From: Heptranchias perlo
Taxonomy: Eukaryota
DNA length: 64,000 bases
Assembly: GCF_035084215.1 (NCBI RefSeq)
Contig: NC_090363.1
Coordinates: forward strand, 5,890,001 to 5,954,000
Direction: 5' to 3'
Shown here: piece by piece, positions 541-42,504 of the stretch
Layout: every line of letters begins with the position of its first letter
Numbering within the stretch: the stretch's first letter is position 1
Made by a program: the position numbers and the translations under genes
The notes under the pieces: model-generated
Told to the model about the DNA's origin: nothing
The model's database searches: none
What the model saw: the letters and a program-made list of their open reading frames with translations, nothing else

Positions 541-867
541 GCTTTACAGTAACCGAGGTTCCTCTACCGACTGCCTTCGGCTCGCCCATTATTTCAATCT
601 CACAGTAATACACTCCAGACTCGCATTGCGTCATATTCATAATTTGGATTGATGCATCCCGCCTGTCATTGAACGCATCCTTGTCGGCTTTTTTTAGTCC
701 TTTCTTGTATCTCGGAGAATCGAAGTCTAAGTGACTGCTATCTTTTCTCCATTTGTACGTACCCACCCCTGATATACGAAAGGTGCAATTCAAAATCACG
801 CTTTCACCTTCGAATAAAGTAACTGAAGAGGGATATTGCACTATGGTAGATGTTTCAGCTTCCAAAC
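541..867 (-). CDS. Gene A exon 2: V-set (VJ-type) Ig domain, NKp30/NCR3-like receptor; gene continues beyond the window start
   Basis: 327 nt phase 1-1 exon, acceptor ...tgtgcgtcactag|, donor AAG C|gtaag. Encodes GLEAETSTIVQYPSSVTLFEGESVILNCTF...YKWRK...DASIQIMNMTQCESGVYYCEIEIMGEPKAVGRGTSVTVK, with B-strand Cys, C-strand Trp, YYC and a J-like GxGT motif. Confidence 0.92.
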
Positions 868-959
868 CTAGTGACGCACAAAAAAACACAAGGATTAATT
901 CGCCATCGTTACAGGATAAAGTAATGCGCATTATGCACCTTGTACCGATAACATCTTGG

Positions 960-1320
960 TTTTGCAGCACCACTATCGCCTGTGACTCAAATAGTTGTAG
1001 GTTCAAGGCGCAATTGTGGCCTTCAGCACATTATTCTAGGCTGACACTTCAATGTCGTACTAAGGGAATGTGTTTTTTTCAAAGCGGAGAAAGTTCTCCC
1101 GGTGCAATAGCCAAGGTTCAGTCCTCAAGAAACACCACCAAACAGCTTAACTGGCCATTCGTCTCATTGCTCTTTGTGGGACTTTGTTGTGAGCAATGTG
1201 GTTGACGCGTTTACCTACAAAGCAACAAATACTATTCAAAAAACAGTTCAGTAGTCATTCATTGGCTCATGGACGCCTTGAGGTTGCTTAAGATGCAATA
1301 CAATTGCAAATTCTTTCTTT
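960..1320 (+). mobile_element. Decayed Deu-domain (SacSINE1-like) tRNA SINE
   Basis: ggttcaag B box, taggctgacacttc, ttctcccggtg, and a ...ttctttcttt tail; similar to 15253-15551. Confidence 0.65.
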
Positions 1321-2389
1321 GTATCATGCAGTCTCAACTTACACTTTTGCTTTAATATGTTACGTTATTAATTCCAAAGGAAATTATTATATGAATGACA
1401 GAAGAAAGAAAGAGAAAGAGAGAAAGAAAGTAAACAAAAAAGAAAATGTTACATTCATTATTGCTTCATTAATAATAGTATGAAGTAATAAATCAATTCT
1501 ATACATGTTTTATCCTTATATAATTATCCAGGAATGTCTGATTTCCACATGAGGGAAATATAAGAAAACACGTTCAGCAAATGTAATAGAAGCGGGATAT
1601 TAGCTTGTTGTATATATTCGACAATAAGCCGTAAGTTGTACAGTAAATCATTTGTGCATTGTAAACTGTGTACATCTTAAAGTCAGGAAAAATAAAACAT
1701 TGGCTCATGTAAATTCAGTCATCTAATGGACGGTAAATATCGAGTCTAATATACCAGGCGACTGTCAGAAAATTAATTAGTTAAGGACAGTATGGTCATT
1801 GCGATGAATTTGTGAACCGCTGTTTAGATATTGAAGCCATACGCTAGTCACCCTTGTGAACATAAGGTACCACTTTTCGTTACAGATTGAACCAAGGTTT
1901 TTTTGTATATTGAGCTCAATTCCATCAATGATCAACTTTTTACACCTTGCCAATAATTAAATCAATTTCATTTACTTCCTACGTTTAAAGATTATCCTCT
2001 CGGACCCTGGTGTATGATTATCTCATTTGGCTGCTAACCGCAAAGCAAAAATAAGCTATGAATAGAATAATAGGATATGACCTATTAAAAATATAGTTAT
2101 TGTGATGCTTTCACAGATAAAAACCTTCATTGTTTATTTTTTATCAACGTGTGTCCATGAGTTCCTTGGGGTGATTTATTCATTTAATGGCCAATATTGC
2201 TGGGGTATAAAATATACCCAGGACAGAAAACCGCTAGCAAGATTTCCAAATATATGCAGAATCATTAAACAAAAAATGATGAAAAATATTATTCAAATAA
2301 CAAGCAAGGAATATTACAGAGAACAACAAAGAACGATAGTTACTTTTCTAAATGTGGTGCATTTATATTAGTTGATTTTACAAACATTA

Positions 2390-3352
2390 TTTTGACATAT
2401 ATTAATAACCTGGACTTAGGTATACAGGGTATAATTTCAAAGTTTGCAGATGACACGAAACTCGGAAATGTAGTAAACAATGTGGAGGATAGTAACAGAC
2501 TTCAGGAGGACACAGACAGACTGGTGAAATGGACAGACACATGGCAGATGAAATTTAACGCAGAGAAGTGTGAAGTGATGCATTTTGGTAGGAAAAATGA
2601 GGAGACCAATATAAATTAAATGGTACAATTTTAAAGGGGGTGCATGAGCAGGGGGACCTTGGATGTATTTGCACAAATCTTTGAAGTTGGCAGGACAAGT
2701 TGAAAAGGCTTTTTAAAAAGCATATGGGATCCTGGGCTTTATCAATAGAGGCGTAGAGTACAAAAGCAAGGAAGTTACGCTAAGCCTTAATAAAACACTG
2801 GTTAGGCCTCAGCTGGAGTGTTGTGTTCAATTCTGGACACCACATTTTAGGAAGGATGTCAAGGCCTTTGAGAGGGTGCAGAAGAGATTTACCAGGATGG
2901 TATCAGGGATGAGAGACTTCAGTTATGTGGAGAAACTGGAGAATTTGGTGTTCTCCTTAGAGCAGAGAAGATTAAGATGAGATTTGATATAACTGTTCAA
3001 AATCATGAACGGTTTTGATCGAGTAAATAAGGAGAAACTGTTTCCGGAGCAGAAGGGTCAGTAACGAAAGGATTCAGATTTAAGGTGATCGGCAAAAGAA
3101 CCAGAAGCGACAGGAGGAAAATATTTTTTATGCAGCGAGTTGTTATGATCGGGAATGCGCTGCCTGAAAGGGTGGTGAAAGCAGATTCAATAATAACTTT
3201 CGAAAGTGAATTGGATAAATACTTGAAGGGAAATAAAATACACGGCTATGGGGAAAGAGCAGGGAAGTGGCACTAACTGGATAGCTCTTTCAAAGAGCCG
3301 GCACATGCAGGATGGGCCGAATGGCCCTTTCTGTGCTGCATCGTACTATGAA
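2390..3352 (+). mobile_element. 5'-truncated CR1 LINE (RT C-terminus and 3' UTR)
   Basis: YINNLD...SKFADDTKLG, WQMKFNAEKCEVMHFG; 3' UTR gatgggccgaatggcc. Confidence 0.93.
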
Positions 3353-4472: not shown

Positions 4473-4533
4473 CCATTAGAAAAATTGAAACCAGATGGAA
4501 AATAACGGTTTTTGCGCATCGATCCATCGCCAT
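4473..4533 (-). CDS. Gene A exon 1: signal peptide MAMDRCAKTVIFHLVSIFLM(G)
   Basis: 61 nt from ATG to G|gtaagt (phase 1); joins in frame to the V exon, giving the hydrophobic leader ...IFLMGLEA/ETST. Confidence 0.85.
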
Positions 4534-17507: not shown

Positions 17508-18959
17508 CCTCTCCCTGTGTTTTTCACAGATTAAAACAGACTTAAGTCCATTAACCGTTCGTACGGCACCAACGCGGTTGGGAAAACATGCCTCATATTC
17601 ACCATAAAATCTGTACTGTTTGTCAAGCACCTTTAAACATAAAAACTTGCTGTATAATGGGAAGAACATTCTAATGTCATGAGGCTATTAAGCCATACAT
17701 ACTTTCAAAAATGTAATCAGCGGGAATTATGCGATATTCTCCAGGATACAATTTCAGATAACTAAAATGACGCAATGTTACCGGTGGAGTACAAGAAATG
17801 GATGGGGAGGAGTGAAATTGGTCTTACACAGTAGCGCAAAACAGGCGATAGCTCATCTGCAGCCAGCATTAGGCTCTGTCCGATTTTCTTCTCCATTGGA
17901 GAAGAGATCGGGCGGAGCGCAAAACGGGCTGCCCATGCTCTATCACCCGTTTTACCCTAACGCCTAAGATTAGTTCCACCTGCACCGCCTTTTCGAGGTG
18001 CTTGACACGGTTTAAAATTGTTCTTGCCTCCTGAGGCCTTGGAAATTGGCGTGTGTAGACCCAGGTTATTGAGGGTTGCTCATACTCAGTGAGTTTACTG
18101 AAGCGTATTCCAAGCGATCTACATTCCTCTTCACTCTACTCTTCTTTCCCTCTTGCTTTATAGTCAACTGGGAGTAATGCAGTAACTGCTCCTGAGCAGC
18201 GCCATGCTGGGGAAATGCCTAAAAGTATTAAAATATTAAAATTAGCAATAAACAGCAATCGTCATCACGGAAACTATGTGCTTCCATACATTCTTACTGT
18301 GTTCAAATCAAGACTCGTGGAACTTTCTCTTAATTTAACTTATACTTTACCGGACCTCGGCGTACTGAAACTCTTTACATTACTGAACCTTCCATTACTG
18401 CCTCGAGATTGTCAAACCCAGTTTTGGTTCACCTAATTACTTATTGTTAATTTATCTTCTCTGCTACTTCAGTATCGGTGGGTCCCTGCACCACGCTCCC
18501 TGCCCTTTTACATGGTCCTAATAAAAAAAAACATCAGTTACCAATATCCCAATACCACACATGTACCATCAATCAAAATGTTTGCAATGAGACAAGAGGA
18601 TTCAATAAAATTCAACCCCATTTATAATTAATCGGGAGTGCAATGGCGATAAAAAGAGATCTGTTCTGTGTTTATCAAGTGACGGAAGGTAAAGAACAGT
18701 TTCCACTTCACACCCAATGTGACCATTGGGGCATTTGATGGTCGCTTATAGCATGGGTTTGATGCACAGTAAAGCTCCCTCGATTCTATAAGTGGGCCTT
18801 AATCAGGAAGCACAAAAGAGCATTCCTGTACCAGAATTGCAACATGATGTGATTGTCCACAGTCCTTGTGGCTGATAATAGTGACATTGTCAGTTTTTAT
18901 GGAAATTTAATGCCAAAATTTTGACCGAGACAAACACGTATTAGGACATGATTGGGATA

Positions 18960-20283: not shown

Positions 20284-20718
20284 CTATATATATATTCAAA
20301 TTGAACCTGGGAGTTGAAAGATGACTTTACGCTTTGGATAATGGTGTATTTTGAACCCCTGGGGCCTTAAAATATTTGAACCTTGAAATCCTGTTACAAC
20401 CGTCTATCATTCGACATGTAAAACATCTGATAGTTCTTACTTGTGCTGTTGCCTGTACATGACCGGAAGCTGTGGTAATGAGAATGTCAGAATTATTTAA
20501 TGCTGAAAAAATAAAATTAATCATATAACAGGATTTTTAATGCAGTTATTTAGATAGTAATAAGAATGAGCAAGGAATCGCATCTCGGATCTCATAAAAG
20601 TTGTGACAAAAATTGAAATTATTTCCCTTCCTGTTAAATTCTACTGAACAAAAAAGAAATTATGGAAAATAAAATAGATATTTAAACTCTGGTTCTTCCC
20701 CCGTTAATTATCGTGTCT

Positions 20719-21878: not shown

Positions 21879-21998
21879 TTTTATTTCTCCACATCAGTCG
21901 AAATGTCAGAAATATGATTAACACAGCTATCAACGCCAGGGCGACCAGCAAAACCGGTGTTATGTCGGTCCCCGCATCCTTTGTTTCCATCGTGCTGC
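21879..21998 (-). CDS. Gene B exon 3: stalk + transmembrane (C)STMETKDAGTDITPVLLVALALIAVLIIFLTFRLMWRNK
   Basis: 120 nt phase 1-1, acceptor tcttgttatttcag|, donor A|gttcgt; about 20 hydrophobic residues followed by basic stop-transfer residues. Confidence 0.82.
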
Positions 21999-22740: not shown

Positions 22741-23094
22741 ATCTCACTTCCAGTGTGGTGCCATTGGTGACTCTCTGTCTCTTTTCTGCAACTTGACAGT
22801 AATAGGTGACTGAGTCTCTCGCCATGAAGCCAAAGATTTTAATAAAAATTTCATCCTTGCCAAACGCCTCCTGGGCCACTTTCTGCAAGTGGTCTTTATA
22901 CGATGGACTTTTGTCCCGATTTTCGCCGGTCGATAGACCTCGTGTCCACTTTGTTATGTTGAACAGTGAACCCTTTCCCTCAGAATCCAGGGCGCAGCTC
23001 AATGTCACCGACTGGCTCTCTGTTAAGGTTATAAATGGAGAGAACTGAAATATGGCACCATTCATCTGATCATTAATTTTAAATTCCACCAAAT
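22741..23094 (-). CDS. Gene B exon 2: VJ-type Ig domain (5' boundary uncertain; possibly pseudogenising)
   Basis: Open frame AIFQFSPFITLTESQSVTLSCALDS...ITKWTRG...IFIKIFGFMARDSVTYYCQVAEKRQRVTNGTTLEVR, donor AGA T|gtaag. The only in-phase AG found (23095-23096) is weak; the AG at 23066-23067 is phase 0. Confidence 0.8.
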
Positions 23095-24575: not shown

Positions 24576-26489
24576 ATTTATCTTATTAGAAGAGAGAAGC
24601 TATAGCTCTTGAATCAATTGGCAGAGAAAATTCATGGTAGGAAATCGTTAATTTCTGAAATTGTTTCTAGTCCTTTAATATGACTGGAAGCAAAGCCTTG
24701 TATCTGCTAAAAAACGGATTGTCTTTTTTTTTTAGGAAGTACTAGTAAGAGTTGTTGCTTTGAGGAGACTTTAAATTAGTATATAGAAAATCTACGGGCG
24801 AACTATTGATGTAAATTATGCAAAATTCCGAGCCCGTATTTTTATTGAAACATTTTTTATTATGCTTCGTTGTGACTTATAATATGCCTCCATTTTTATA
24901 AAAATTACCTGAAACATTACATTTCCCCGGATGAATGATATAAATATTTACAAATGCGTTGAGAGGGCGTTCAGGGCTAAGTCTGAGGATTCCCCTGTGT
25001 ATTTGCCAAACTGCTGATTTAACACTCATCTCAAAGACAACCCGTGTGAGAATCGTATGACCGTCCCAATATTCCCAGGGGTATCCCGCAGCATGTCGCA
25101 AGCGCGTATTGGATGAAATAAAATATATAGTGAACCTGTGGTAACATCCTTTTTGTTTCGTAAAAATCTACTCGGCTTTTTGCACCGAAGCTACTTTGCG
25201 TTATTATGGAGGATGCATGCTCGAATTCAAGGAACACAGAGCTAAATATACACGCACAGTAACAGAATGGGGATGATTTTTCGCGGCCTACAGCTATTTG
25301 AAGCTACAAGTGACGGATGCAACTGCATACTTCAATAGATTGGAGTCTGAGCTGTACAAAGCTCAAACTCTAACCCACAATCTATAAAATAAACCCAACA
25401 CATTTATTATTAGGATTCTATTGTTGAATCCCAAAGCGGCCGGCCGCTGTCTATTTAAGCATTAAATGCAGGAGCCTTTGGATAGAAGTTTCCATGCGGC
25501 TACCCAACGCCGCACAAGGCCCGTGAAAGAGCGGGTGGCTTATCGGAAAATCGGGGCTGCACTTCGCAAGATTTTCCTACGATCATCGTCAATGGACAGA
25601 AAATCAGGGGCAGTCCTCCCACGATTTCCCCATAGGCCACCTAATGAGTGCGAGACCCCGAAAGTAGCGCTCGAAAAATTCCGCTCAGATTTCCAAAGTA
25701 GGTGTGCGAGTGAAAGGTGGTGATAGTGTTTCCGTGTTCATGCTTATCAATTTCCAAACAGAATGAATCATACCTGGTGAGCCGAACTGCACATTTATTT
25801 TGGATACTTTCTGCGTTGGCAATTTGCTGGACCAAAGGTCGGCTTCGGGCCATTCCGGTTACATTGATATCTTCATTAACGACAATAGTTTACCGTCAGA
25901 CAAATGAAACTTTTGGCGTATAGCATCTTTTTTTGCCCCATATCTTTCGCATTTAATGTCCGCTTAACCTGGCACCACCCACGGGTGTTTGGTTTAATTG
26001 GAGGGGGGCGTGCAAAACAGTACAGTCTGTACTGCACTCATTACGGAATTATAAATATATAATGTTTAAATTTAATACTGACTAGTGATAAATGCATTTT
26101 AAACTGCAAATCATAGAAGTGGTACCGTTCAATCATAAATCAACACAAGACATACTAACTAACGATTTGTGGAATGCTACAGGATGCCAATATCTTTATG
26201 AAATTACTCATCTGACATTAAAGTCCACAAATGCAGCACTCCTTCGAAGCGAGCTAATCAAATCGTTTCACGTTAGAATTTTATATCCAATCTATTACGG
26301 TTAAACTTGAAGTTTTGCAGAAAATGGCAACCATCGGCGCCAAAACAATTTCGTGGCAAGATCGCCTTAACATTACCATAAGATACTGCAAATATTTCAC
26401 AAATTGCAAAAAAAAAATCATTTTAAAAGTTATGCCGTTATTCACTGGAGTATCTGCATTTTATAATAGAGGTGAATAAGTTAACTCAC

Positions 26490-26547
26490 CAGTGCATAGT
26501 ACAAAGAGAATCAGGTGCATAAAGGCAATTCGCTGGATGATTAGCAT
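26490..26547 (-). CDS. Gene B exon 1: signal peptide MLIIQRIAFMHLILFVLCT
   Basis: 58 nt, ATG to G|gtgagt (phase 1); hydrophobic; homologous to the gene C leader (same length, shared TGATTCTCTTT and flanking sequence). Confidence 0.85.
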
Positions 26548-28321
26548 CTTCCATGTGCACATGGTAAAGATATGGAGAGAGTGTGATGCAGCCCGTAGAT
26601 GAACAATCTTAATACAATAAGGTGAGCGTGAATGGAACTATTTGCGGTCTCTCTATTTTGGATACCCAGAGCTCCATTTATCGTCCGGTCAGAAGGGGAA
26701 AAACCCGACTTCAGAATGCCCAATGTGAAGAAAAACTCCAAAGCCGACAAAAAGTTAAAAGGCATTTGTCTTTGGTGCTTATTTTGGCGTTCATAGAGTA
26801 AAGGGAAGGTTACAGTCCAAATGATGTCCTTATCAATATATAATCACATAAATTGTATGCTCCTGAGGCACGTCGAATATCCGCAAAATCGTGGGCTATC
26901 TGATTTTAATCGACGGAAAATCACATTCTGCAGGTGCGCAATTTCGCTGTATACGGCCCGGGAGAGCAGCAGGAGCGCGGAAAGAGGCTTTTTAGCCGCC
27001 TAGCGTGCTGCAAGTGTCTCCAATTCCGTCTAACCTAGACTCTGTTTATAATGTAAACCTTCCGCTGAAAAATAAAATGAACAGAAAGAAGAATTACTTT
27101 GCTTGCTATGTGTGATTACATTCTAAAAATGTTACTTCTTAAACGCTTTTGAGGAGCTCACTGCAGACAGTGGCTTAATCTACACGAAGGGCAAAGGGGC
27201 CTCAAGATGAATAAGAAGGCGATTGGACAGATTATCGCCATGGCAACGAAGGTCATTGTACCAGTTGTTGTCATACATTTCGTCCATGAGACCCACATCC
27301 TGCTCTCATGAACCTATTTCCACTAAACTGCTAACCACCCACCTTCCCGTCCCAGCCCCCCATGCTAAATGATATTGTAAACGGTTCCCTCCCATCAAGT
27401 ACTGCCCCCTCCCTTTCAAGTCTGCCGGCTCTGACTTTTAGATTACCGCCCCATCTCCAGCCTCCTTTTTTCTCTCCAAAGAACGCGTTGTCGCCTTCAA
27501 AATCCGTACGTATCTTTCCCGCAGCTCCATGTTTGAATCTCTCCAATGCGGTTTCTGCCCCAGTTATGTGAACAGATTGTGCGCCATGTGCATTCAAGTC
27601 TCCGCCCTTGGACTTAAGGGAGTGAAGTTAGGGGCCGTGCCTGGGAGAACGGCCGGGGTGCGAGAGATTAAGGGTTTTACTAAGGATTAGGGCAGCAACA
27701 GCGGGGTTAGGAAGTGATTCAACAGATTGACAGCTGTAGAAGTAGCCTGGAGAACAGAGGGCCGAAGACCAGACACGTGGGAGTTTGAAAGTGTAGTTGT
27801 AAGTGCGTTGGGGAGAGGTTTTTTTTAAAGTGAGTCAATAATGAAAAACAACTCGATCAAGTATCACCCACGCTGCACCCAAATAGAAGGAGCAAAACAA
27901 CAAATGCCTAAAATATAACCTGGTGAAAGGAGGCCGAACTGCCTCCAACATTCGGAAGTACAAAACTTCAACCGCATGCGTGAGAAATGTTGAAGCAAAG
28001 CTCTATTTAGGTTTTCTGCGCCAAAGTCACCCAATTAACAAAGGAAACACGTTTGCTTGTTTCTGGTGAGGTTCAAGCTTTAAAAAGGTGTCTGCGTGAT
28101 AGTAAAAATGGCATGAACTAAATACCAACCTTGGATTAAGCATAATCATGGTGCTTCACCAATGGCATTCGGAAGTACTTTTTGCTTAACGAAATCTCTC
28201 TGGTTGTTCAATTTTTGATTGAATAGGATCGTTTGCATCCCCGCTATGTTGGTGTTTGTTCGGAGCCATGCCAGTTGCCCAGTCATATGAAAAGTAGATT
28301 AGTATTGAGTCAAATTCATTG

Positions 28322-29264: not shown

Positions 29265-30180
29265 CAGCTCCTCCAGCCTCTCAACAGAACTGAAATCCCT
29301 CATCCCTGGCACCATTCTAATAAATCTCTCCTGCGCCCTCTTTAAAGCATCTGAAGACATCCTTCCTAAAGTGTAATGCAGAATTGAACACAACACTTCA
29401 GCTGAGGCCTGATCAGTGTTTTATAAAGATTTAGCATAACTTCCTTGCTTTTGTACTCTACGCCTCCATTAATAGTGCCCAGCATCCTATGTGCTTTGTT
29501 TAGAGCCTTCTCAGCTTGCCCTGCCACCTTCAAAGATTTGTGTATGTGCATCCCCATGTCTCTCTGTTCCTGCACACCCGTTAAAATTATACCACTTAGT
29601 TTACATTGCCTCTCCTCATTCTTCCTACCAAAATGCATCATTTCACACTTCTCTGCCTTAAATTTCACCTCCCATGTGTCTGCCCATTTCACCAGTCTTT
29701 CTATGTCCTCCTGAAGTCTCTTACTATCTTCCATATTGTTTACTACATTTCCGAGTTTCGTGACATCTGCAAACTTTGAAATTATACCCTCTATACCAAA
29801 GTAAAGGCCATTAACATATATCATAAAGAGCAGTGGTCCTAATACTAACCCCTGTGGAATTCCACTGTATATTTCACTCCAGTCTGCAAAACAACCGTTC
29901 ACCACTACTCTCTGCTTTCTGTCCCCTAGGCAATTTTGTATCCACGCTGCCATTGTCTCTTTAATCCTATGGGCTTTATTTTTACTAACAAGTCTATTAT
30001 GTGATACTTTGTCAAATGCCTTTTAGAAGTCCATATACACAACATCAACTGCACTAGCCTCATCAACCCTCTCCATTACTTCAGAAGAACTCAATCAAGT
30101 TAGTCAAACACGATTTTCTTGCAACAAATCCGTGCTGACTTTCATTTATTAGCCCATAATTTTCCAAATGCCAATAAATA
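29265..30180 (-). mobile_element. CR1 RT fragment
   Basis: KQRVVVNG...GIPQGLVLGPLLF...KFADVTKLG; ESQHGFVARKSCLTN. Confidence 0.92.
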
Positions 30181-30404
30181 TTGTTCGGATTATTATTATT
30201 GAGAAAATGTCTTGATAAATTGACTTTCACATTTTGGTTCTGACTTAAGATTAAGAGACGTTTTAAGGTACTGCAGAGGCGATTCACAATCCCTCAAACT
30301 CGAAAAGGCCTCGTTTTGTTTTCGGCTGGCTTTGTACACTTTGTCGCCTCGATTATCACTGGGTGCATGTTATATTCAATCAAGGAAAGATGACATCCAC
30401 TCAT

Positions 30405-30830
30405 TTAATCAAGAAAACGGAGAGGGTTGATGAGGGTGGTGCGGTTGATGTTGTGTATATGGACTTTCAAAGGGTGTTTGATAAAGTACCACATAATAGA
30501 CTTGTCAGCAAAATTGAAGCCCATTGGATTAAAGGGGCAGCGGCAGCGTGGATACAAAATTGGCTCAGGGACAAAAAGCAGAGAGTAGTGGTGAACGGTT
30601 GTTTTTCGGACTGGAGTGAAGTAGACAGTGGTGCCCCCCAGGGGTCGGTATTAGGACCACTGCTCTTTTCATATATATTAATGACCTGGACTTGGGTAAA
30701 CAGGGCATAATTTCAAAGTTTTCAGATAAGACGAAACTCGGAAATGTAGTAAAGCTCTTTCTGTTCCTGCACGCCCTTTAAAATTGTACCATTTAGTGTA
30801 TATTGCCTCTCCTCATTCTTTCTACCAAAA
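30405..30830 (+). mobile_element. CR1 RT fragment with a short inverted segment at ~30757-30830
   Basis: VDVVYMDFQRVFDKVPH...GAPQGSVLGPLLF, then a switch to minus-strand CR1 sequence. Confidence 0.85.
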
Positions 30831-31457
30831 TATTATCTATTTGTTAGCTGATTCGGTCTTGATCTTAATGCTGCGAAACTATGCATTCATTCTGCAATGT
30901 TCTTGACAAGTCAGTAACACCTCGATGGGGTAGCAATTCGATTATTTCCTGTTGGAACATGAAAAGTGAGAATTTGATTAGTTCTGGAACAATGTTAATA
31001 CAGAGAATTAGCCTCTTCAATCATTCGTGATTTCCGCCCATGCCTTTTATTGCTGATGCAGTGCGGTTATCCTCGTTGTATCAATATCACTGAACAAGGT
31101 TTAACGAGGCAGCAAGAAACATATAAACAGGGAAATTGGATAGAATTAGATAGTTTGTTGTTAAACTGAAGTCGCCCGTGGTAAAACACATTGACAATAA
31201 TTAGTTTTGCCTACAAATCGGTGTCTACCAACCCGACTACATCTGGACCATGCTGTTAGTGGATGGCAGGGAATGTTAAGCTACGTCCCTTAGTTACATT
31301 TTATGAATATTTTTGCATTATTAAGCAAATTACTCTCAGCGTCCACTCAGCTTTCAAGATGTCCGCATTTAAAACAAATCACTTTAGCACATAGACCGTT
31401 CCCCTCAGAATATTAATTGAGACATGCATCGTGTGGAGAGGCAACTTGCGCTTTTTA

Positions 31458-31544
31458 TTATATAGTTGATTGATTGCAGAGTTGTGCGAGATCGTACCTG
31501 TGCTGCTCAGTATAAGAGTCCACATCGTGCAGATTCAAGCACTT
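31458..31544 (-). CDS. Candidate gene C terminal exon (phase 0 KCLNLHDVDSYTEQHRYDLAQLCNQSTI*; phase 1 EVLESARCGLLY*)
   Basis: Good acceptor tttctccctattatag|; the phase-0 stop overlaps an AATAAA (31454-31459). Confidence 0.3.
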   Translation of the reverse strand, partial: KCLNLHDVDSYTEQHRYDLAQLCNQSTI

Positions 31545-31629
31545 CTATAATAGGGAGAAATCCATCTTACCTCAAACTTTGTTGTTAAAAAGGTTTATTT
31601 TAATTTATTCAGGATATTCTGGAAATATA

Positions 31630-32678
31630 ATGGTAGGTACTCACATTGGCAGGATGTGACTAGTGGAGTCCTGCAGGGATCTGTCTTGGGGCCTCAATTA
31701 TTCACAATATTCATTAACGACTTAGATAAAGGCATAGAAAGTCTCATATCTAAGTTTGCCGATGACACAAAGATTGGTGGCATTGTAAACAGTGTAGAAG
31801 AAAACATAAAATTACAAAGGGATATTGATAGATTAGGTGAATGGGCAAAATTGTGGCAAATGGAATTCAATGTAGGCAAATGTGAGGTCATCCACTTTGG
31901 ACCAAAAAAGGATAGAACAGGGTACTTTCTAAATGGTAAAAAGTTAAAAACAGTGGATGTCCAAAGGGACTTAAGGGTTCAGGTACATAGATCATTGAAG
32001 TGTCATGAACAGGTGCAGAAAATAATCAATAAGGCTAATGGAATGCTGGCCTTTATATCTAGAGGACTAGAATACAAGGGGGCAGAAGTTATGGTGCAGC
32101 TATACAAAACCCTGGTTAGACCGGACCTGGAGTACTGTGAGCAGTTCTGGGCACCGCACCTTCGGAAGGACATATTGGCCTTGGGGGGAGTGCAGCGTAG
32201 GTTTACTAGAATGATACCCGGATTTCAAGGGTTAAGTTATGAGGCGAGATTACACAAATTGGGGTTGTATTCTCTAGAGTTTAGAATGTAAAGCGGGTGA
32301 TTTGATCGAAGTTTATAAGATGTTAAGGGGAACAGATACGGTGGATAGAGAGAAACTATTTCCGCTGGTTGGGGATTCTAGGAGTAGGGGGCACAGTCTA
32401 AAAATTAGAGCCAGACCTTTCAGGAGTGCGATTAGAAAACACTTCTACACACAAAGGGTGGTAGAAGTTTGGAACTCTCTTCCGCAAATGGCAATTGATA
32501 CTAGCTCAATTGCTAAATTTAAATGTGAGATAGATAGCTTTTTGGCAACCAAAGGTATTAAGGGATATGGGGCAAAGGCGGGTGTATGGAGTTAGATCAC
32601 AGATCAGCCATGATCTTATCAAATGGCGGAGCGGGCTCGAGGGGCTGAACGGCCTACTCCTGTTCCTATGTTCCTATA
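31630..32678 (+). mobile_element. CR1 RT and 3' end
   Basis: QGSVLGPQLFTIFINDLD...FADDTK; tail cctgttcctatgttcctat. Confidence 0.94.
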
Positions 32679-32829
32679 TGTTACCACGTATGCCGAATCC
32701 ACGTCAGAGTGATTGCCAGTTTCATTCTGTGAGACAACTGTAGCGAAATAATAATACACCATAACCTTGAATAATTAAATTCCCAAATGATATACTTAGA
32801 AAAGCAACGTTTACAATGTTGCAAGTACA

Positions 32830-34795
32830 TCTATGTAATAATACGACGGTCTTATACGAAGACAAAGGACAGTGGAGAACCCACGGAATGGGAGAGATAC
32901 AAAGGACAGCAAGGGGATAAAAATAAAGTGGTAAGAGCTGCAAAACGAGAATACGGGAAAAAACTTGCAAGGGATATTAAGTACAACATTAAAGGCTTTT
33001 ACAAATATATTAAGAGAATGAGGGTGGCTAAGAGTAATGTTGACCCCTTTATGACAGATTCAGATGATATTGTAATTGAAAATCAGGAAATGGCAGACTT
33101 ACTAAACAGATACTTGATATCAGTCTTCACAGTACAACATAAGGATAAGGTACCAGAGATACAAGCAAACTAAAAATAAATCAAGGGGAGGAACTAACTA
33201 GATTCAGTATGAGTTTTTTAAAATGGTGATGGAGAAACTAAGGGGATTAAAGATAGACAAATCCCCAGGACCCGATAGTTTCCACCCCAGAGTATTAGAA
33301 GATGTAAGTGAGGAAATTGTTGATGCATTAGTCATGATCGTCCAAAACTCTCTTGATTCAGGAATTGTCTCCTTGGATTAGAAAATTGCCAATGTCACTC
33401 CATTATTTAAGAAGGGTAGGAGAGATAAATTAGGAAACTATAGGCCTATTAGGCTAACTACAGTTGTGGAGAAGTTACTAGAATCTGCTATAACGGACAG
33501 AGTGACTGAGTATTTGTATAAATATAAGCTGATCAGAGAGAGCCAGCATGGATTTGTAAAGGGTGCGTCATGTCTAACGAATCTAGTTGAATTTTTTGAA
33601 CAGGTAACAAACGTGTTAGAAAAGGGAGTCTCTGTGGATGTTATTTGTATGGACATCCAGAAAGCATTCGATAAGGTTCCACATAAGAGACTGTTAACCA
33701 AAGTGAGAGTGCATGGAATTGGAGGCAACCTATTGACTTGGATAGGGAGTTGTTTATGAGGTGGGAGACAGAGATAAGGGACAATGGGTATATAATCAAA
33801 TTGGCAGGAGGTGTCCCCTAGCGATCTGTACTGGGGCTTCAGCTTTTCACCATATTTATAAATGACTTGGATGAAGTAATAGAAAGCCATATATCTAAGT
33901 TTGCTGACAATACTAAGTTACGTGGCACAGTAAATGGTGTAGATGGGAGCAGAAAGTTGCAAAGGGACATTGATAGATTAAGTGAGAGGACAAAACTGTG
34001 GCGATGGTGTTCAGTATGAAAAAGTGTGAGGTCATCCACTTTGGACCTAAGAAAGATAGATCAGGGTATTTTCTACATGGTGATAAGCTGGAAACTGTGG
34101 GTGAGCAGAGAGATTTATCGGTTGGAGTGCAGAAATCACTAAAAGCTAATGGACAGGTACAAAACATAATTAAGAAGGCGAATGGAATTTTGGCCTTTAT
34201 CTCAAGGGGACTGGAATAAAAAAGGGTGGAAGTTATGTTACAGCTGTACAAAGCTCTGGTTAGAGCCCATCTGGAGTATTGCATTCAGTTATGGGGAAAA
34301 TACCTCAGGAAGGATGGATTGACCTTGGAGCGACGCAGTTTCACCAGAATGATACCGGGGTTAAATTATGAGGACAGATTGCATAGACTAGGCTTGCATT
34401 CCCAAGAATATAGAAGATTAAGGGGTGATGGAATTAAGGTGTTTAATATAATCAAACGAATTGATAGGGTAAATGGGGAGAAACTATTTCCTCTGGTGGG
34501 GGAGTCCAGAACAAGGGGGCATAACCTTAAAATTAGAGCCATGCCGTTCTGGAGTGATGTCAGAAAGCACTTCTTCACACAAGGGGAAATAGAAATTAGG
34601 ATCTCTCTCCCCAAAAAGCTCTTGAGGCTAGGTCAAAATTTTAAAACTGAGATTCATAGATTTTTGTTAGGCAAGGATATTAAAGGTTACGACACCAAGA
34701 CTGGTAGATGGAGTGACGATACAGACCAGCCGCGATCTAATTGAATGGTGAAACAAGCTCGAGGGGCTGAATGGCCTACTTTTGTGCCTATGTTG
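32830..34795 (+). mobile_element. CR1 ORF2 remnant (~2 kb)
   Basis: Linker region (aaatccccaggaccc), ESQHGFVKGASCLTN, KAFDKVPH, 3' UTR. Confidence 0.93.
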
Positions 34796-36519: not shown

Positions 36520-36648
36520 CATTGCATTTCCATTTCTGTTTGCGTGCTAGTATTATCATGATTACAACAGCCAGCAAGACTAGTGCGCTCCACATTACAT
36601 GTGGTAAACCAATCGCTGGGCTCTGGCAATTTGAATTCGTTATCCTTC
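36520..36648 (-). CDS. Gene C exon 3: stalk + transmembrane RRITNSNCQSPAIGLPHVMWSALVLLAVVIMIILARKQKWKCN
   Basis: 129 nt phase 1-1, acceptor ttcatttcatcatttcag| (similar to the gene B TM acceptor), donor G|gtatgt; this frame is not in the ORF track. Confidence 0.87.
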
Positions 36649-36689
36649 CTGAAATGATGAAATGAAGTTAGTATTTCTGTTTCTATTCT

Positions 36690-37085
36690 AGGAACAGGAA
36701 CATAGGAACAGGAGTAGACCATTCAGCCCCTCATGCCTGCTCCGCCATTTGATAAGATCATGGCTGATCTGTGATCTAACTCCATATACCTGCCTTTGGC
36801 CCATATCCCTTAATACCTTTGGTTGCCAAAAAGCTATCTATCTCAGATTTAAATTTAGCAATTGAGCTGGTATCAATTTCGTTTGTGGAAGAGAGTTCCA
36901 ATTCCGTTTGCGGAAGAAAGTTCCAAACTTCTACCACCCCTTGTGTGTAGAAATGTTTTCTAATCTCACCCCTGAAAGGTTTGGCTCTAATTTTTAGACT
37001 GTGACACCTACTCCTAGAATCCCCAACCAGCGGAAATAGTTTCTCTCTATCCACCCTCTCCGTTCCCCTTAATACTTATAAGCTT
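36690..37085 (-). mobile_element. CR1 3' fragment (same subfamily as 32302-32678)
   Basis: DREKLFPLVGDSRSR...; contains a small internal duplication near 36876-36925. Confidence 0.9.
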
Positions 37086-37206: not shown

Positions 37207-37236
37207 CTCTCTCTCTCACACACACACACACACACA
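37207..37236. repeat. (CT)n(CA)n compound microsatellite
   Basis: ctctctctctcacacacacacacacacaca. Confidence 0.9.
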
Positions 37237-37413
37237 GGTCATTCACATCTCTTCGAAAGGGCAGAAATATGAACATAAACAATTAGTTGTTCATTTTAAC
37301 TCTACAACATTACAATAATGAACTCAGAGACAATAGCACAATGTAACCAACAGACAGATCTGTAACAATGGTACGGGTTTTTTTTTAAAGCATTACTTCT
37401 AATATCTATTCAC

Positions 37414-37562
37414 GCCTCATTTATAGTCTGATGTCGTTTCGGTCCCTTTCACATTTTCCCCATTCGGTCTTTGCAGCAGTTACAGGGATCTGAGTCTGTC
37501 CCTATCACATCAGAGATTTTAGTAAACATTCTGAGTGGCTGTTCCACTGCGGAGGGAATCGC
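37414..37562 (-). pseudogene. Decayed duplicate of the 3' half of a V exon, inside gene C intron 2
   Basis: RMFTKISDVIGTDSDPCNCCKDRMGKM* aligns with gene C RIFIKISDLIEKDADTYFCSIRLMGEG; shares tcagagatttta with the gene C V exon; in-frame stop; ends in C|gtgaat. Confidence 0.7.
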
Positions 37563-38003: not shown

Positions 38004-38272
38004 TTGCCCAAGCCTGTCCTCAGTAATGTCGGCATTCTACACTTTTGACTGGGTAATGTTCAGGTCTGTGAACTCTGTCACGCATACACACTATCCTGTG
38101 CTGGGAGAGAAACATCAATAGGTTGCAGTGTGTTAATTCATATAAACAATACATTGCAATAGCATGCGGTAAACTAATAGTACAGTAATTAAAACAGAGA
38201 AAACGGAATCATACTTATCCTGTAAAATTACACCACGTGCTTTCTAAAGGGCTCTTTGTATTTGGTACTTAC

Positions 38273-38614
38273 GTTTCACTTCCAGTTTGGTCCCATTTCC
38301 GCTTCTTGCTCCTTCTCCCATTAAACGTATGCTGCAGAAATAGGTGTCTGCGTCTTTCTCAATCAAGTCAGAGATTTTAATGAATATTCTGTTCTTGAAA
38401 AATGAATCGCTCTCCGATTTATTCAGCCGACATTCATAAAATGGATTATTGTCCAGTTCGTACCCATTCGGGTCACCCCGTGTCCATGTAGCTGTACCGA
38501 TCAGAGATAGATTTCGTTCAGAATCCACGGCACAGTTCAGTGTCACCGACTCCCCCTCTTGTGCAGTTATAACGGGAGGGAACTGGAAAACGGTGAATGG
38601 CATCTTCCCACCTG
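38273..38614 (-). CDS. Gene C exon 2: VJ-type Ig domain, NKp30/NCR3-like
   Basis: 342 nt phase 1-1; tandem acceptor tttcactttacag|cag|, donor AAA C|gtaagt. FTVFQFPPVITAQEGESVTLNCAV...LSLIGTATWTRG...IFIKISDLIEKDADTYFCSIRLMGEGARSGNGTKLEVK resembles recalled NKp30 motifs (IGSVTW; YVCRVEVLGLGVGTGNGTRLVV). Confidence 0.93.
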
Positions 38615-39007
38615 CTGTAAAGTGAAACTTTAACATTAAACCCATTGTTTTTAATTGGAAGGAAAATCTGCCGGTGTCTGTGATAGGCGGCCTATCCGCA
38701 ACGCCCTGGCGACAAGTTGAACTCCCACCCCAGCAGCTGTGATTTTCCCACCAGCAGTTCACTGCATTCCAGGCCCTGATATGGCGTGGACCGCATAAAA
38801 TTCCATCCAATGCTCAAAGCTTCCAGCTATCTGGCTCGAGAAGGAAAAGATCTAATTCTCTTCACTACTTAATTGGACAGAATGGATCATGGGCATCCAT
38901 GAAATGTGTCTGTGTAATCTATGAAATAAACTGGACATTAACAAATACCTTACCAATTTCGCATCAAGTCACAGTTATCTAACTCTTTCAAAATGAAGAA
39001 AACAAAG

Positions 39008-40643
39008 GGGTAGATTTTCCTCCTTAATGTCGTGGCGTTAAACATCGCCTGAGCGAAGCACGCCCTTAGCTGTTCCAGTACAGCTACAACACTGGCATCT
39101 ACCCGACAATGTGGAAAATTGCCCAGATATGTCCTGTCCACAAAAAGCAGGTCAAATCCAATCCGGCCAATTGCCGCCCCATCATTCTACTCTCAATCAT
39201 CAGCAAAGTGATGGAAGGTGTCGTCGACAGTGCTATCAAGCAGCACTTACTTACCAATAACCTGCTCACCGATGCTCAGTTTGGGTTCCGCCAGGACCAC
39301 TCGGCTCCAGACCTCATTACAGCCTTGGTCCAAACATGGACAAAAGAGCTGAATTCCAGAGGTGAGGTGAGAGTGACTGCCCTTGATATCAAGGCAGCAT
39401 TTGACCGAGTGTGGCACCAAGGAGCCCTAGTAAAATTGAAGTCAATGGGAATCAGGGGGAAAACTCTCCAGTGGCTGGAGTCATACTTAGCACAAAGGAA
39501 GATGGTAGTGGTTGTTGGAGGCCAATCATCTCAGCCCCAGGACATTGCTGCATCTTCAGCTGCTTCATCAATGACCTTCCTTCCATCATAATGTCAGAAA
39601 TGGGGATGTTCGCTGATGATTGCACAGTGTTCAGTTCCATTCGCAACCTCTCAAATAATGAAGCAGTCCGAGCCTGCATGCAGCAAGATCTGGACAACAT
39701 CCAGGCTTGAGCTCATAAGTGGCAAGTAAAATTCACGCCAGACAAGTGCCAGGCAATGACCATCTCCAACAAGAGAGAGTCTAACCACCTACCCTAGACA
39801 TTCAATGGGATTACCATCGCCGAATCCCCCACCATCAACATTCTGGCGGTCACCATTGACCAGAAACTTAACTGGACCAGCCATATAAATACAGTGGCTA
39901 CGAGAGCAGGTCAGAGGCTGGGTATTCTGAGGCGAGTGACTCACCTCCTGACTCCCCAAAGCCTTTCCACCATCTGCAAGGCACAAGTCAGGAATGTGAA
40001 GGAATACTCTCCACTTGCCTGGATGAGTGCAGCTCCGACAACACTCAAGAAGCTCGACACCATCCAGGACAAAGCAGCCCGCTTGATTGCACCCCATCCA
40101 CCACCCTAAACATTCACTCCCTTCACCACCGGCGCACAGTGGCTGCAGCGTGTACCATCCACAGGATGCACTGCAGCAACTCGCCAAGGCTTCTTCGACA
40201 GCACCTCCCAAACCCGCGACCTCTACCACCTAGAAGGACAAGAGCAGCAGGCACATGGGAACAACACCACCTGCACGTTCCCCTCCAAGTCACACACCAT
40301 CCCGACTTGGAAATATATCGATGTTCCTTCATGGCCGCTGGGTCAAAATCCTGGAACTCCCTTCCTAACAGCACTGTGGGAGAACTTTCACCACACGGAC
40401 TGCAGCGGTTCAAGAAGGCGGCTCACCACCACCTTCTCAAGGGCAATTAGGGATGGGCAATAAATGCCGGCCTCTCCAGTGATGCCCACATCCCATGAAT
40501 AAATTAAAAAAATTGAACGCGCGGAATTTAAAGGGCAGGAAAATTCAGCGGATTGCGTTGGGGGCGTGCCAGCCAGATTTTTATTTCTGCGCTCCGCCCA
40601 GGCGATGCTTAACGCCCAGGCGGCAAATGCGAAAATCTACCCC
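39008..40643. mobile_element. MITE-like element with TIRs, interrupted by a LINE
   Basis: gggtagattttc...ggcgttaaacatcgcctgagcgaagc (39008-39060) is the imperfect inverted repeat of 40590-40643 (...gaaaatctaccc). Confidence 0.75.
39068..40513 (+). mobile_element. 5'-truncated non-LTR retrotransposon (CR1-group, distinct from the other CR1s), RT and 3' end
   Basis: WKIAQICPVHKK, AQFGFR, LDIKAAFDRVWH, FADD; AATAAA/A-rich tail. Confidence 0.92.
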
Positions 40644-41621
40644 TTTTTCGAAAGTACCTGCAGCTTTGAAAAGCTGTTACATAACCACCCAGCTCACGTT
40701 TCTGGACTTTGGCGCACAGGGCTTCCAGCGACGCTGAGGGGGCATTTTTTCTGCGGGTCTTGTACTGGCATTTTGCTCGCTGCCGAGTCGGGATAGAGTC
40801 TGCCGGAAATTCAGCTCTCCACATAACATTCGCCTGAAGATGATTTAATGGGCCCTGCAATGTCAGGTTTACAATCTGTCCGGATTTAAGATGTCTTTTT
40901 CAATCTGCTCTTCAATTAATTTAAAATGAAAAAGCACAAAATTAATCCACACATAAATATCACCAGCAAAATAGATATTCTGTGAATTCCTTACAATATC
41001 TGCGGGTGTCTGCAGATTTTTTTTGAGTTTCCTGAAACGTTAGAGCGGATACCTAAGATAAGTGGCCGGTGCAACTGGCCGAATTTTAAAATATATCAGA
41101 GAAAAAAAGTTACGGCCTTTATTAACAATACGGTAACAATTACATGCACTAGCGACATGGTTATATGCATTCAGAAACATTTTTCTTTGGTCTGCACTTC
41201 TGGAGAAACTGTAAACTGTCTTTCATTAACATACTTACCATATCGCTTACAATTAGTGTTCAGAGGAATTCCTGCTCTACAAATTTGGAAAACTGAACGA
41301 AATTAATTCTGATCAATGCCCAGATATGACGTGTCAAATATAAAGAAAGTAAAAATTGATCAAATATTATCCTTGCAGAGTATGGAACATAAAAAATAAC
41401 TCAAAGCAAAGAAGTTGACACCTGTCAAAAGCAACGCAAATGATCCAAGCAAATGAGAAACTCGGGAATGCTGAAATGCAGAAGTCACAGTATAGCAACT
41501 GCCCAAGCACAGTGGCGCCGTCACTTTACATTGCGTGAAATAAACTTATTTGTGTGTGTTACAGGAAAATTCCAGTAAGATAAAAGAATCAGGGAAAGGC
41601 TGGTACATTTGCGATTACATT

Positions 41622-42200
41622 GAATTACATACAATGTACAGTACAGGCATAGGCCATTCCGCCCAACTAGTCTATGCCGGTGTTTATGCTCCAACCGAGC
41701 CTCCTCCCACCCTATTTCATCTCATTCCAATAGCATAACCTTCTATTCCTTTCTCCCTCGTGTACTTATCTCGCTTCCCCTTAAAAGCATCTCTGCTATT
41801 CCCCTCAACTACTCCACGTGGTAGCGAGTTCCACATTCTAACCACTCGCTGGGTAAGGAAGCTTTGCCTGAATTTATTGGTGACTATCTTATATTTACGA
41901 CCAATAGTTTCGGATTCCCCATAAGTGGAAACATCTCCTCTCCGTCTACCCTATCAAATCCTTTCATAATTTTAAAGACCTCTATCAGGTCACCCCTCAA
42001 CCTTCTCTTTTCTAGATAAAAGAGCCCCAGTCTGTTTGGCCTTTCCTGATAGGTATAACCTCTCAGTTCTGGTATCTTCCTTGTAAATCTTTTTTGCACC
42101 TTCTCCAGTGCCTCTATATCCTTTTGGTAATATGGAGACCAGAACTGTTCACAATATTCTAAGTGTGGTCAAACCAAGATTCTATATCAGTTTAACATCA
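41622..42200 (-). mobile_element. CR1 3' fragment
   Basis: QKRFTRKIPELRGY...EKRRLRGDLIEVFK. Confidence 0.9.
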
Positions 42201-42446
42201 TTTTAAGTAATACATTCACCAATCGGAGACTGAGATCATTTCGAAAACTCTAATTGTGTGCAAAATATTCAATTTACATTGATTTCAATATTATAATTAG
42301 AATTATATAGTATTATGTAGTAAAGACGAGCATAAGTTAACTCGATCATTATACAGTAGCGATTCATACAACTTAACTAGAATATTAAATAGTACCGAGT
42401 GGTATAAGTAGAGCATTATATAATAACGTAGTATAAGTTAACTAAC

Positions 42447-42504
42447 CAGTGGTTAGCGGAAAGAGAATCAACTGTAAAATAATAATTTGTTGCATTAAAA
42501 CCAT
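42447..42504 (-). CDS. Gene C exon 1: signal peptide MVLMQQIIILQLILFPLTT
   Basis: 58 nt, ATG to G|gttagt (phase 1); paralogous to the gene B leader. Confidence 0.83.

Follow-up and report, generated by a model that had tools for sequence, protein, structure and literature searches.

Mammalian NKp30 (NCR3) carries an arginine in its transmembrane (TM) segment, signals through CD3 zeta and FcR gamma adaptors, and has a short tail; in humans, it binds B7-H6 and its tail varies through alternative splicing. The NCR3 family of the nurse shark reportedly comprises eight divergent subtypes, with linkage to the MHC and expression in the thymus. NKp30 is often cited as the sole natural-killer receptor that can be traced from sharks to humans. 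It is described as an MHC-linked, non-rearranging VJ gene (PMC12227049) and, on both counts, bears on how antigen receptors arose. The nurse shark family was published by Kinlein et al. (2021, Immunogenetics 73:333), and accessions MT914154-914161 are given as 'NCR3 genes' in PMC12227049. NCR3 families in sharks are therefore already on record, and the three sevengill genes analyzed here (A, B, and C) add to receptors of this kind. Like nurse shark NCR3, they are highly divergent paralogues with a single, non-rearranging VJ domain; they differ in coming from Hexanchiformes and in having, in the B-type, a V exon without A and A' strands. Since the sevengill belongs to an early-branching shark order, the cluster adds a data point on the ancestral form of the family, though it does not overturn current views.

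The window (the whole 64,000-nucleotide stretch of Heptranchias perlo contig NC_090363.1 that was analyzed) contains three V-set ORFs, head-to-tail on the minus strand, at 527-1006 (gene A), 22733-23101 (gene B), and 38244-38810 (gene C). These positions, together with Pfam V-set matches (E-values of 4.2e-11 for A, 2e-10 for C, and 1.2e-4 for B, whose 22.6 bits fall under the 26-bit cut-off), bear out the tandem arrangement proposed in a first-pass annotation of this DNA. The same annotation noted phase-1 leaders of 58-61 nt, and the leaders measure 61 (A), 58 (B), and 58 nt (C), each with a GT donor. All splice sites in the three models are GT..AG, and all three V exons are phase 1 in and phase 1 out. 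A J-like G strand was likewise noted inside the single V exon: it lies there in A (GRGTSVTV) and C (GNGTKLEV), with a GT donor directly after it, and is degenerate in B (TNGTTLEV). Stalk/TM exons were located for B and C, while that of A is off the window. Pairwise identity is 43% for B-C, 36% for A-C, and 32% for A-B, which makes B and C the closest pair, again as first proposed. The proteins P0007 (A) and P0174 (B) each have a single Ig domain. A suspicion that the genes might be mis-annotated held in part: NCBI models A and B with the right exons, though under the name 'uncharacterized protein', and no annotated protein corresponded to C. Neighbors of NCR3 in the MHC class III region (LST1, AIF1, and TNF-family genes) were not recognized within the 64-kb window, using the ORF list and tblastn with family proteins only. 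Taken as a whole, the locus probably holds three tandem type I receptors, each with a single non-rearranging VJ domain, from an NCR3 (NKp30)-like assemblage of cartilaginous fish in which B and A stand for different lineages and B would be inhibitory.

Judged by their V-domain sequences, B and C share a lineage with a nurse shark protein that was deposited under the name NCR3. In a careful tree of 62 V domains, assembled without mammalian NCR3, TCR, Ig, and CD28-family V domains and with rat and squirrel SIRP-type V domains as outgroup (own branch, 100/100), B and C fall in a seven-member clade with nurse shark NCR3 P0004 (support 100/98), B on a long branch (1.16). The backbone of this tree is a polytomy, and it did not retain a quick-tree grouping (92) of B/C-type proteins with bony-vertebrate NCR3-like proteins. 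Gene C, in which every hallmark V residue is present, shares 70% V identity with a Heterodontus NCR3-like protein and 66% with P0004, which itself has an uncharged TM and the ITIM VEYATI at the end of its tail. Human NKp30 (PDB 3NOI, 3PV6, 6YJP, 9FWW), which like the window genes has one V-type domain with a G strand of the form GxGT(K/R)L.V, is the best solved relative of C: it aligned over 104 residues at 7.7e-11, versus 6.9e-7 for the next family, and a profile of C-type proteins gave 2.6e-10 for NKp30 and 6e-8 for the next match. For a model of gene B, NKp30 led the top Foldseek matches in TM-score (0.72) and had the smallest rmsd of them (2.9 Å), in a ranking whose pattern is generic for V-set domains. 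The clade with nurse shark NCR3 and the NKp30 match of C uphold the earlier reading of the locus as a tandem cluster of non-rearranging, single-VJ-domain, NKp30/NCR3-like genes.

That label had been given to all three genes, and for A it fits less well. The features of gene A inside the window are as follows.

4473..4533, minus strand: coding part of the leader exon, 61 nt, ATG at 4533, phase 1, donor GTAAGT
541..867, minus strand: V exon, 327 nt, phase 1 to 1, J-like GRGTSVTV

Both exon pieces match Heptranchias perlo P0007 (XP_067830063) exactly (2/2), the leader peptide MAMDRCAKTVIFHLVSIFLM being an exact substring of this NCBI protein (21/21 identical in tblastn). The stalk/TM and tail exons lie past the window start, and the stalk/TM is known only from P0007, whose TM segment, WMWVAVAGGVTILITLTLLVVIAVLV, is free of R, K, D, and E. 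Use of a donor inside the V exon (807-806) would yield a V-less isoform; in P0011 (146 aa), ...VTLFE is joined straight onto the stalk. The juxtamembrane part of the tail, RRNKAYALLVRE, is strongly conserved, and the motif RRNKAYALLVREC is invariant across an alignment of four sharks and occurs, slightly changed, in proteins from Pristis, Narcine, and Pristiophorus. The gene A tail contains no ITIM or ITAM; its AYALLV has K at position -2.

Gene A represents a separate, well-supported elasmobranch lineage, whose one-to-one relatives come from sharks and rays and whose tie to NCR3 proper is weak. In the careful tree, the A-type forms an eight-member clade of its own, from sharks and rays (99/99), with no resolved tie to NCR3-named clades. 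Against solved structures, the A-type profile gave 1.7e-8 for NCR3 and 9e-8 for SIRP alpha, a lead of only five-fold, and the single gene A sequence scored SIRP alpha (2e-6) and also TCR alpha above NKp30 (2.4e-5). SIRP, which comes second among solved families with the A-type profile, shares a V domain with a J-like strand, and SIRP alpha has ITIMs in its tail; SIRP alpha and beta differ from the window genes in having a V and two C1 domains instead of one domain. The NKp30/NCR3-like assignment therefore stands for B and C, by clade and by NKp30 match, and is loosened for A, which is separate and weakly tied.

Alternatively, A, B, and C could all be true co-orthologues of vertebrate NCR3, tandem duplicates of one ancestral NKp30 gene, although we consider this rather unlikely. 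In an exhaustive search with gene A, the best relatives outside the elasmobranchs bore NCR3-like names (lungfish, 1e-17), and they and nurse shark NCR3 (1.3e-17) came well ahead of SIRP-type mammalian proteins (5.7e-12 and 3.5e-10), and among single-domain solved structures NKp30 ranks first for the A-type profile. Furthermore, A adjoins B in the window and a B-type unit in a sawshark model, and the whale shark orthologue of A is automatically named NCR3-like. The latter point is offset by the inconsistency of automatic names for A-type proteins among species, which range over 'uncharacterized', 'myelin protein zero-like 1', and 'NCR3-like', and a word search with gene A found no nurse shark NCR3-named protein among its matches (four hits of six candidates). 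The isolated 99/99 clade and the single-sequence scores given above also speak against co-orthology, as do the TM segment and tail of A, which have nothing in common with those of the B/C-type or of NKp30. A separate A lineage beside a B/C lineage remains our preferred arrangement.

Gene B has the following features.

26490..26562, minus strand: first coding exon, ATG at 26562 (NCBI model), second in-frame ATG at 26547, phase 1, donor GTGAGT
25774..25870, minus strand: alternative exon between leader and V, 97 nt, contig joints in run X1
22741..23019, minus strand: V exon in the form spliced in RNA, 279 nt, contig joints, acceptor ttaacag followed by AG
21879..21998, minus strand: stalk/TM exon, 120 nt, contig joint and NCBI model
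20441..20469, minus strand: 29-nt exon (TSGHVQATAQ), in P0174 (isoform X1), absent from P0173 (isoform X2)
18066..18218, minus strand: tail exon with stop codon, two ITIM-type motifs

Spliced leader-V-TM RNA had been set beforehand as a test of the cluster, and it is present for gene B in contigs, which come from one sample of one study and from runs whose RNA nature is only a guess. Contigs of run X1 join leader to V (26490 to 23019) and V to TM (22741 to 21998, depth 40), both with GT..AG ends; the V-TM joint recurs in run X3 at a depth of 3.7, and intron bins, e.g. 22201-22600 and 24201-25600, have zero depth. Counted from the ATG at 26547, the leader spans 26547-26490 (58 nt), with the other in-frame ATG 15 nt upstream at 26562, and the 5'UTR extends past 26600 (contig record 7 spans 26600). 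Joints of the 97-nt exon (25870 to 26490 and 23019 to 25774) reached a depth of 9.09 in run X1, versus 19.2 for the form that skips it; its inclusion would shift the frame and lead to an early stop in the V exon.

The V exon of gene B starts at ESQSVTLSC, 45 nt further in than the start predicted by homology, and it matches NCBI P0173/P0174 at 100%. Since an acceptor within the ancestral V exon is in use, the codons of the A/A' strands (23065-23020) are intronic and the V domain lacks these strands; the former A-strand codons would now supply the intron with its pyrimidine tract and acceptor. In the sawshark model P0012, the V exon starts at the same point, likewise without A/A' strands, and 25 residues across the TM, DITPVLLVALALIAVLIIFLTFRL, are identical between the two. 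P0012 holds a B-type unit with a two-tyrosine tail and then an A-type unit, indicating that the B-then-A gene order is conserved.

The TM segment of gene B, ITPVLLVALALIAVLIIFLTF, has no R, K, D, or E. All five exon pieces are exact substrings of P0174 and three of the five are exact substrings of P0173, whose tail comes from the same exon in another frame. The isoform X1 tail contains LHYSQL and LEYASV, with tyrosines 23 residues apart, both fitting (S/I/V/L)xYxx(I/V/L), whereas the tail exon read one base later gives ISPAWRCSGAVTALLPVDYKARGKEE followed by a stop (isoform X2), with no ITIM. When the 29-nt exon is skipped, the tail exon is thus read in a different frame and both ITIMs are lost. 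The full isoform, combining an uncharged TM with two ITIMs, would be a putative inhibitory receptor that recruits SH2-domain phosphatases, and the form without the 29-nt exon, frame-shifted and free of ITIMs, would be signaling-null. Inhibitory function, like any ligand or cell type, is what we infer here; the first-pass annotation had suggested that the receptors may bind B7-family ligands. The two tails mirror the tail variation of human NKp30.

Gene C is modeled with three exons and contains a further V-exon fragment.

42447..42519, minus strand: leader exon model, ATG at 42519 or 42504, phase 1, donor GTTAGT, homologous to the leader of B
38273..38614, minus strand: modeled V exon, 342 nt, phase 1 to 1, encoding a complete V domain with GNGTKLEV
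37382..37533, minus strand: decayed 3' half of a V exon, with stops, in the V-TM intron; 99/152 bases identical to the V exon of C plus donor
36520..36648, minus strand: stalk/TM exon model, 129 nt

From the ATG at 42504, the leader spans 42504-42447 (58 nt), with an in-frame ATG 15 nt upstream at 42519, and the surrounding DNA (42413-42615) is 66% identical to that around the gene B leader (26456-26657). An H. perlo paralogue is 87% identical in the V exon, with 76% of the query aligned. Residues R, K, D, and E are absent from the TM segment, VMWSALVLLAVVIMIILA. Comparison of the decayed half exon with the V exon gave an E-value of 6e-15 for that pair and a weak tblastn match. Retroelement ORFs occupy 29.3-34.8 kb of the window. 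Comparisons at the protein, motif, and DNA level revealed no tail exon from 36519 to 26600, and C had no match among annotated proteins and no exact H. perlo protein. Gene C, presumably expressed, combines an uncharged TM with a V domain that is intact and very similar to that of NKp30, but has no recognizable tail exon.

These features could instead reflect decay, a possibility we hold doubtful: C, and possibly B, would be decaying duplicates, the tail exons of C lost to retroelement insertions and B deprived of its normal V acceptor. For C, this reading would account for the empty stretch from 36519 to 26600 with its retroelement ORFs at 29.3-34.8 kb, for a stalk/TM exon far more diverged from the paralogue than the V exon (87%) and weakly matched in tblastn, for the missing exact H. 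perlo protein, and for the dead half V exon in the intron; yet the leader, V, and TM exons of C are all open with canonical splice sites, and its hallmark V residues are complete. Gene B, too, could be decaying, given its sub-cut-off V-set score, its branch length of 1.16, and its two vanished strands, to which a degenerate J motif and a frame-breaking 97-nt exon at about one-third of the leader-V contig depth in run X1 may be added. However, B is transcribed and spliced in frame, with two coding isoforms in NCBI models, and its truncated V start, TM (25 TM-spanning residues identical), and tail are conserved in the sawshark, which is unlike a pseudogene. Working receptor genes therefore remain our preferred reading.

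It is highly improbable that the V exons are germline segments of a rearranging receptor, be it TCR or Ig light chain, or that they come from an unconnected IgSF gene such as SIRP. V domains of TCR alpha, Ig light chain, IgNAR, and SIRP are among the weaker solved-structure matches of A, B, and C, and the B model gave a Foldseek ranking generic for V-set. However, the V exon includes the G strand, with a GT donor right after it, the V exon of B is joined to a TM exon in RNA, each protein has one Ig domain, unlike SIRP, and NKp30 is ahead by four orders of magnitude for gene C. The outcomes named in the first-pass annotation as contrary to its proposal, i.e. V domains grouping with TCR/IgL V or an unrelated IgSF family, or a lack of spliced transcripts, are not what was seen.

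The positively charged TM residue of the NKp30 type is absent from A, B, and C, and none of the three is predicted to work like mammalian NKp30. Human NKp30 differs from them in its TM arginine, while their TMs are uncharged and B carries ITIMs; gene A pairs its uncharged TM with a conserved tail lacking both ITIM and ITAM. The sevengill cluster is of interest for this set of uncharged TMs, ITIM tails, and alternative tails, as opposed to the activating form of mammals. More tentatively, the B-type of squalomorph sharks may be a working, conserved inhibitory NKp30-family receptor without A/A' strands, with the 29-nt exon as a switch, next to an elasmobranch-wide A-type with an invariant, previously unrecognized juxtamembrane signaling motif, a lineage that is perhaps uncounted in the published shark NCR3 family. 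If the truncated B-type V domain is functional, it would be an unusual variant of the Ig fold whose structure is worth solving, and if the A-type lies outside the described family, it would be a conserved orphan receptor with a new signaling motif.

NCR3-like proteins with a VJ-type V domain also occur in bony fish and amphibians (Polypterus P0040, Acipenser P0048, Pleurodeles P0117, Xenopus P0122, Pelobates P0158, Protopterus P0027), and their relation to the window genes falls on the polytomy of the careful tree. Several of them have a TM Arg and a very short tail, i.e. the activating type, unlike A, B, and C. Gene A matches these proteins at 1e-17 to 1e-8, and the motifs DASI.I and YYCEVE..G.G..G.GT are common to them and the window genes.

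The window is vertebrate DNA with many retroelement ORFs and no runs of N, and three V-set ORFs mark genes A, B and C on its minus strand (Pfam V-set E-values in parentheses):

527-1006, minus strand: V-set ORF of gene A (4.2e-11)
22733-23101, minus strand: V-set ORF of gene B (1.2e-4, below the cut-off)
38244-38810, minus strand: V-set ORF of gene C (2e-10)

Scanning for phase-1 ATG-to-GT segments that encode a hydrophobic core yielded leader candidates coinciding exactly with those of the first-pass annotation:

4533-4473, minus strand: leader candidate of gene A (61 nt)
26547-26490, minus strand: leader candidate of gene B (58 nt; second in-frame ATG 15 nt upstream)
42504-42447, minus strand: leader candidate of gene C (58 nt; second in-frame ATG 15 nt upstream)

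The stalk/TM exons of genes B and C, which have similar acceptor regions, were recovered by a hydrophobicity scan, and each of the nine introns that were checked starts with GT and ends with AG. The plus strand and the interval from 43 to 64 kb were covered by the ORF list and by tblastn with family proteins.

Two of the three genes are already represented among NCBI proteins. The V region of gene A is 99% identical to a 235-aa "uncharacterized" H. perlo protein (P0007, XP_067830063), while that of gene B is 100% identical to P0173 (XP_067830067), which clusters with the longer isoform of this gene, P0174 (XP_067830066). When each exon was translated separately, unjoined, and compared as a substring with these proteins, both pieces of gene A were exact in P0007 and all five pieces of gene B were exact in P0174 (three of the five also in P0173). 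Given these exact substrings and the GT..AG introns, H. perlo itself is the most likely source of the window, and the NCBI models of A and B are already correct, though without a gene name. The V domain of gene C matched six proteins in the protein search, none of them identical; since its best H. perlo match (P0003, cluster mate P0175) is a paralogue with 87% identity over 76% of the query, gene C seems to have no annotated protein within the searchable length range of 103-329 aa. The earlier suspicion of mis-annotation thus falls away for A and B, apart from the missing names, but seems to hold for C, for which no identical protein was matched.

In gene B, the one gene whose region was compared with RNA contigs, spliced transcripts show the leader-V-TM architecture proposed for all three genes. 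Contigs from four runs (X1-X4) of one sample in one study, identified as RNA by a tool's guess without a record, were placed on 20601-26600, the gene B region. Run X1 has a contig of depth 40 in which 21998 is spliced to 22741 and a contig of depth 19.2 in which 23019 is spliced to 26490. A variant at depth 9.09 carries an additional exon of 97 nt at 25870-25774. Every joint of this run is bounded by GT..AG on the minus strand. The V-TM joint was seen again in run X3 (depth 3.7), and run X4 partially covers the V exon, whereas run X2 gave no coverage of 20601-26600 apart from a retroelement at 21.0-21.8 kb. Contig depth was zero or near zero in the intron bins of gene B, which argues that the contigs of the four runs derive from cDNA. 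The 97-nt exon lies on the minus strand between the leader and V exons, with a length not divisible by three; on our reading it would break the frame, and because of this length and the predicted early stop it may be a poison exon. At 22860, the X1 and X4 contigs have T at full contig depth where the window has C (plus strand). By our reading this T turns a glycine codon to aspartate in the V domain of gene B (AFGKDE). The T may be an allele carried by the animal that was sequenced.

Gene B has a truncated V exon and two alternative tails. In RNA and in both NCBI isoforms its V exon starts at 23019 (ttaacag/AG), such that the signal peptide runs straight into ESQSVTLSC and the codons that correspond by homology to gene C's strands A and A' (IFQFSPFITLT) are intronic. 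In a by-eye alignment from tblastn output, the place of gene C's acceptor (ACAG) reads ATTAAT in gene B, next to a six-base gap. A model from the sawshark Pristiophorus japonicus (P0012), in which a B-type and an A-type gene are fused, has a B-type V part that begins at the same residue (ESQSVTLNC), 25 residues across the TM identical to gene B (DITPVLLVALALIAVLIIFLTFRL), and a B-type tail with two tyrosine motifs, followed immediately by an A-type V domain. The shared V start and the B-then-A fusion indicate that the truncation and the gene order are common to two squalomorph orders. The remaining exons of gene B are as follows:

21998-21879, minus strand: stalk/TM exon (120 nt)
20469-20441, minus strand: small exon (29 nt)
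18218-18066, minus strand: tail exon (LHYSQL and LEYASV, tyrosines 23 residues apart)

The small exon was located using the phase taken from P0174. An end at 21875 for the TM exon, as given by contig alignment, was replaced by 21879; in the light of P0174, the last four aligned letters were judged to agree with the next exon by chance, one of them being a mismatch. In isoform X2 the 29-nt exon is skipped, and the tail exon is read in a different frame and ends after 26 residues with no ITIM.

Following established knowledge of ITIM receptors, isoform X1 of gene B would be inhibitory: ligand binding would lead to phosphorylation of the two ITIMs and recruitment of tandem-SH2 phosphatases. Isoform X2 would present the same ectodomain and be incapable of signalling. 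Mammalian NKp30 has a charged TM residue, whereas A, B and C all lack one and so cannot work in the same way. An AlphaFold model of P0174 (53 aligned sequences, mean pLDDT 71) is an Ig-like sandwich, and its Foldseek matches are generic V-set domains, with the best TM-score (0.72) for NKp30. Part of the signal peptide is set at the missing A/A' strands in this model, a placement that was not accepted as evidence on the mature protein.

Gene A is present in the window as leader and V exons only. The TM segment of P0007 is uncharged, and its tail contains neither ITIM nor ITAM. Orthologues that are 47-67% identical are present in white shark, bamboo shark, whale shark, sawshark, sawfish and an electric ray; the stretch RRNKAYALLVREC is invariant across four aligned sharks and near-invariant in the remaining orthologues, and the motif is RRNKAYALLVRE. 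Gene A would signal, or be trafficked, via this conserved juxtamembrane motif. A 146-aa protein, P0011, has most of the V domain missing, with ...VTLFE joined directly to the stalk; this structure fits an internal GT donor at 806-808 on the minus strand in the gene A V exon (donor 807-806), which would make P0011 a gene A isoform almost without a V domain. An atlas search with the gene A tail returned no score of at least 0.9 and no trusted lead, and an AlphaFold model of gene A (four aligned sequences, mean pLDDT 40.9) was discarded.

Gene C has a complete V domain, the most NKp30-like of the three (7.7e-11 against human NKp30; next family 6.9e-7), and three open exons with canonical sites:

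42519 or 42504 to 42447, minus strand: leader
38614-38273, minus strand: V exon
36648-36520, minus strand: stalk/TM exon

No tail exon turned up in tblastn, first with six family proteins and later with about 170, in a scan of the minus strand for ITIM patterns, in local alignments of four tail peptides to the three reading frames, or in a blastn comparison of the B and C units; the matches were confined to repeats, the V exon and the leader region. The 10 kb between genes C and B are mostly retroelement sequence. The V-TM intron of gene C holds a decayed copy of a V-exon 3' half with its donor (37382-37533, minus strand), which contains stop codons and is 65% identical to the gene C V exon over 152 bases. 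Gene C may encode a receptor without a tail, or it may be a copy in decay; we consider decay rather unlikely. The closest paralogue, P0003/P0175, lies outside the window and has two NCBI isoforms, one with a tail ending in the ITIM VEYATI and the other with no ITIM, so tails of both kinds recur in the family.

The NKp30/NCR3-like identity proposed for all three genes stands for B and C and is looser for A. An exhaustive search with P0007 found 347 proteins at E <= 0.001; names were looked up for 30 of these, of which 11 carried NCR3 or NCR3-like in the source name (two in UniRef only), the others being "uncharacterized", hypothetical or automatically named (pIgR-like, turtle-like, SIRP-like). 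A careful tree was built from 62 V domains and 116 columns with two SIRP-type domains as outgroup. Isoform duplicates and four fragments were left out, and of the proteins with several V domains only domain 2 of P0012 and the first domain of each of two SIRP-type proteins were kept. Here the A-type domains form a clade of 8 (support 99/99), while B and C join nurse shark NCR3 (P0004) and a further four shark proteins in a clade of 7 (100/98). The backbone lacks resolution, and a join of B/C-type to bony-vertebrate NCR3-like proteins (92 in a quick tree) was not retained. In a profile search against solved structures, NKp30 ranked first among single domains, clearly for the C-type and marginally for the A-type. 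From these clades and ranks, we assign B and C to the shark NCR3 family and treat A as a distinct lineage within a wider NCR3-like VJ assemblage.

Work by Kinlein et al. from 2021 reportedly describes shark NCR3 as an expanded family of divergent genes linked to the MHC; on this basis the family is already known, and the window adds new members to it. Possible novelties are the truncated V exon, the switch by the 29-nt exon and the A-type lineage. Published work describes NCR3 as the non-rearranging, MHC-linked VJ gene of sharks, with MT914154-914161 as nurse shark NCR3 genes (PMC12227049), and counts NKp30 as one of the MHC's VJ genes (PMC10751288) and as a joined-VJ IgSF member (PMC11599192).

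Retroelement fragments with reverse-transcriptase-like ORFs lie at 1-470, 13501-13800, 19028-19474, 21271-21615, 29366-34744, 36776-37054, 39109-40450, 56896-57231, 58483-60563 and 61420-61803, and a C-terminal motif, ..RGDLIEVYKI.., recurs in the retroelement ORFs of the window. Contig depth over the retroelement at 21.0-21.8 kb reached tens of thousands in the four runs, which shows that the sample is rich in these elements. At 45974-46838, a CA-rich simple repeat that is long and imperfect gives His/Thr-rich and Cys/Val-rich ORFs on opposite strands.
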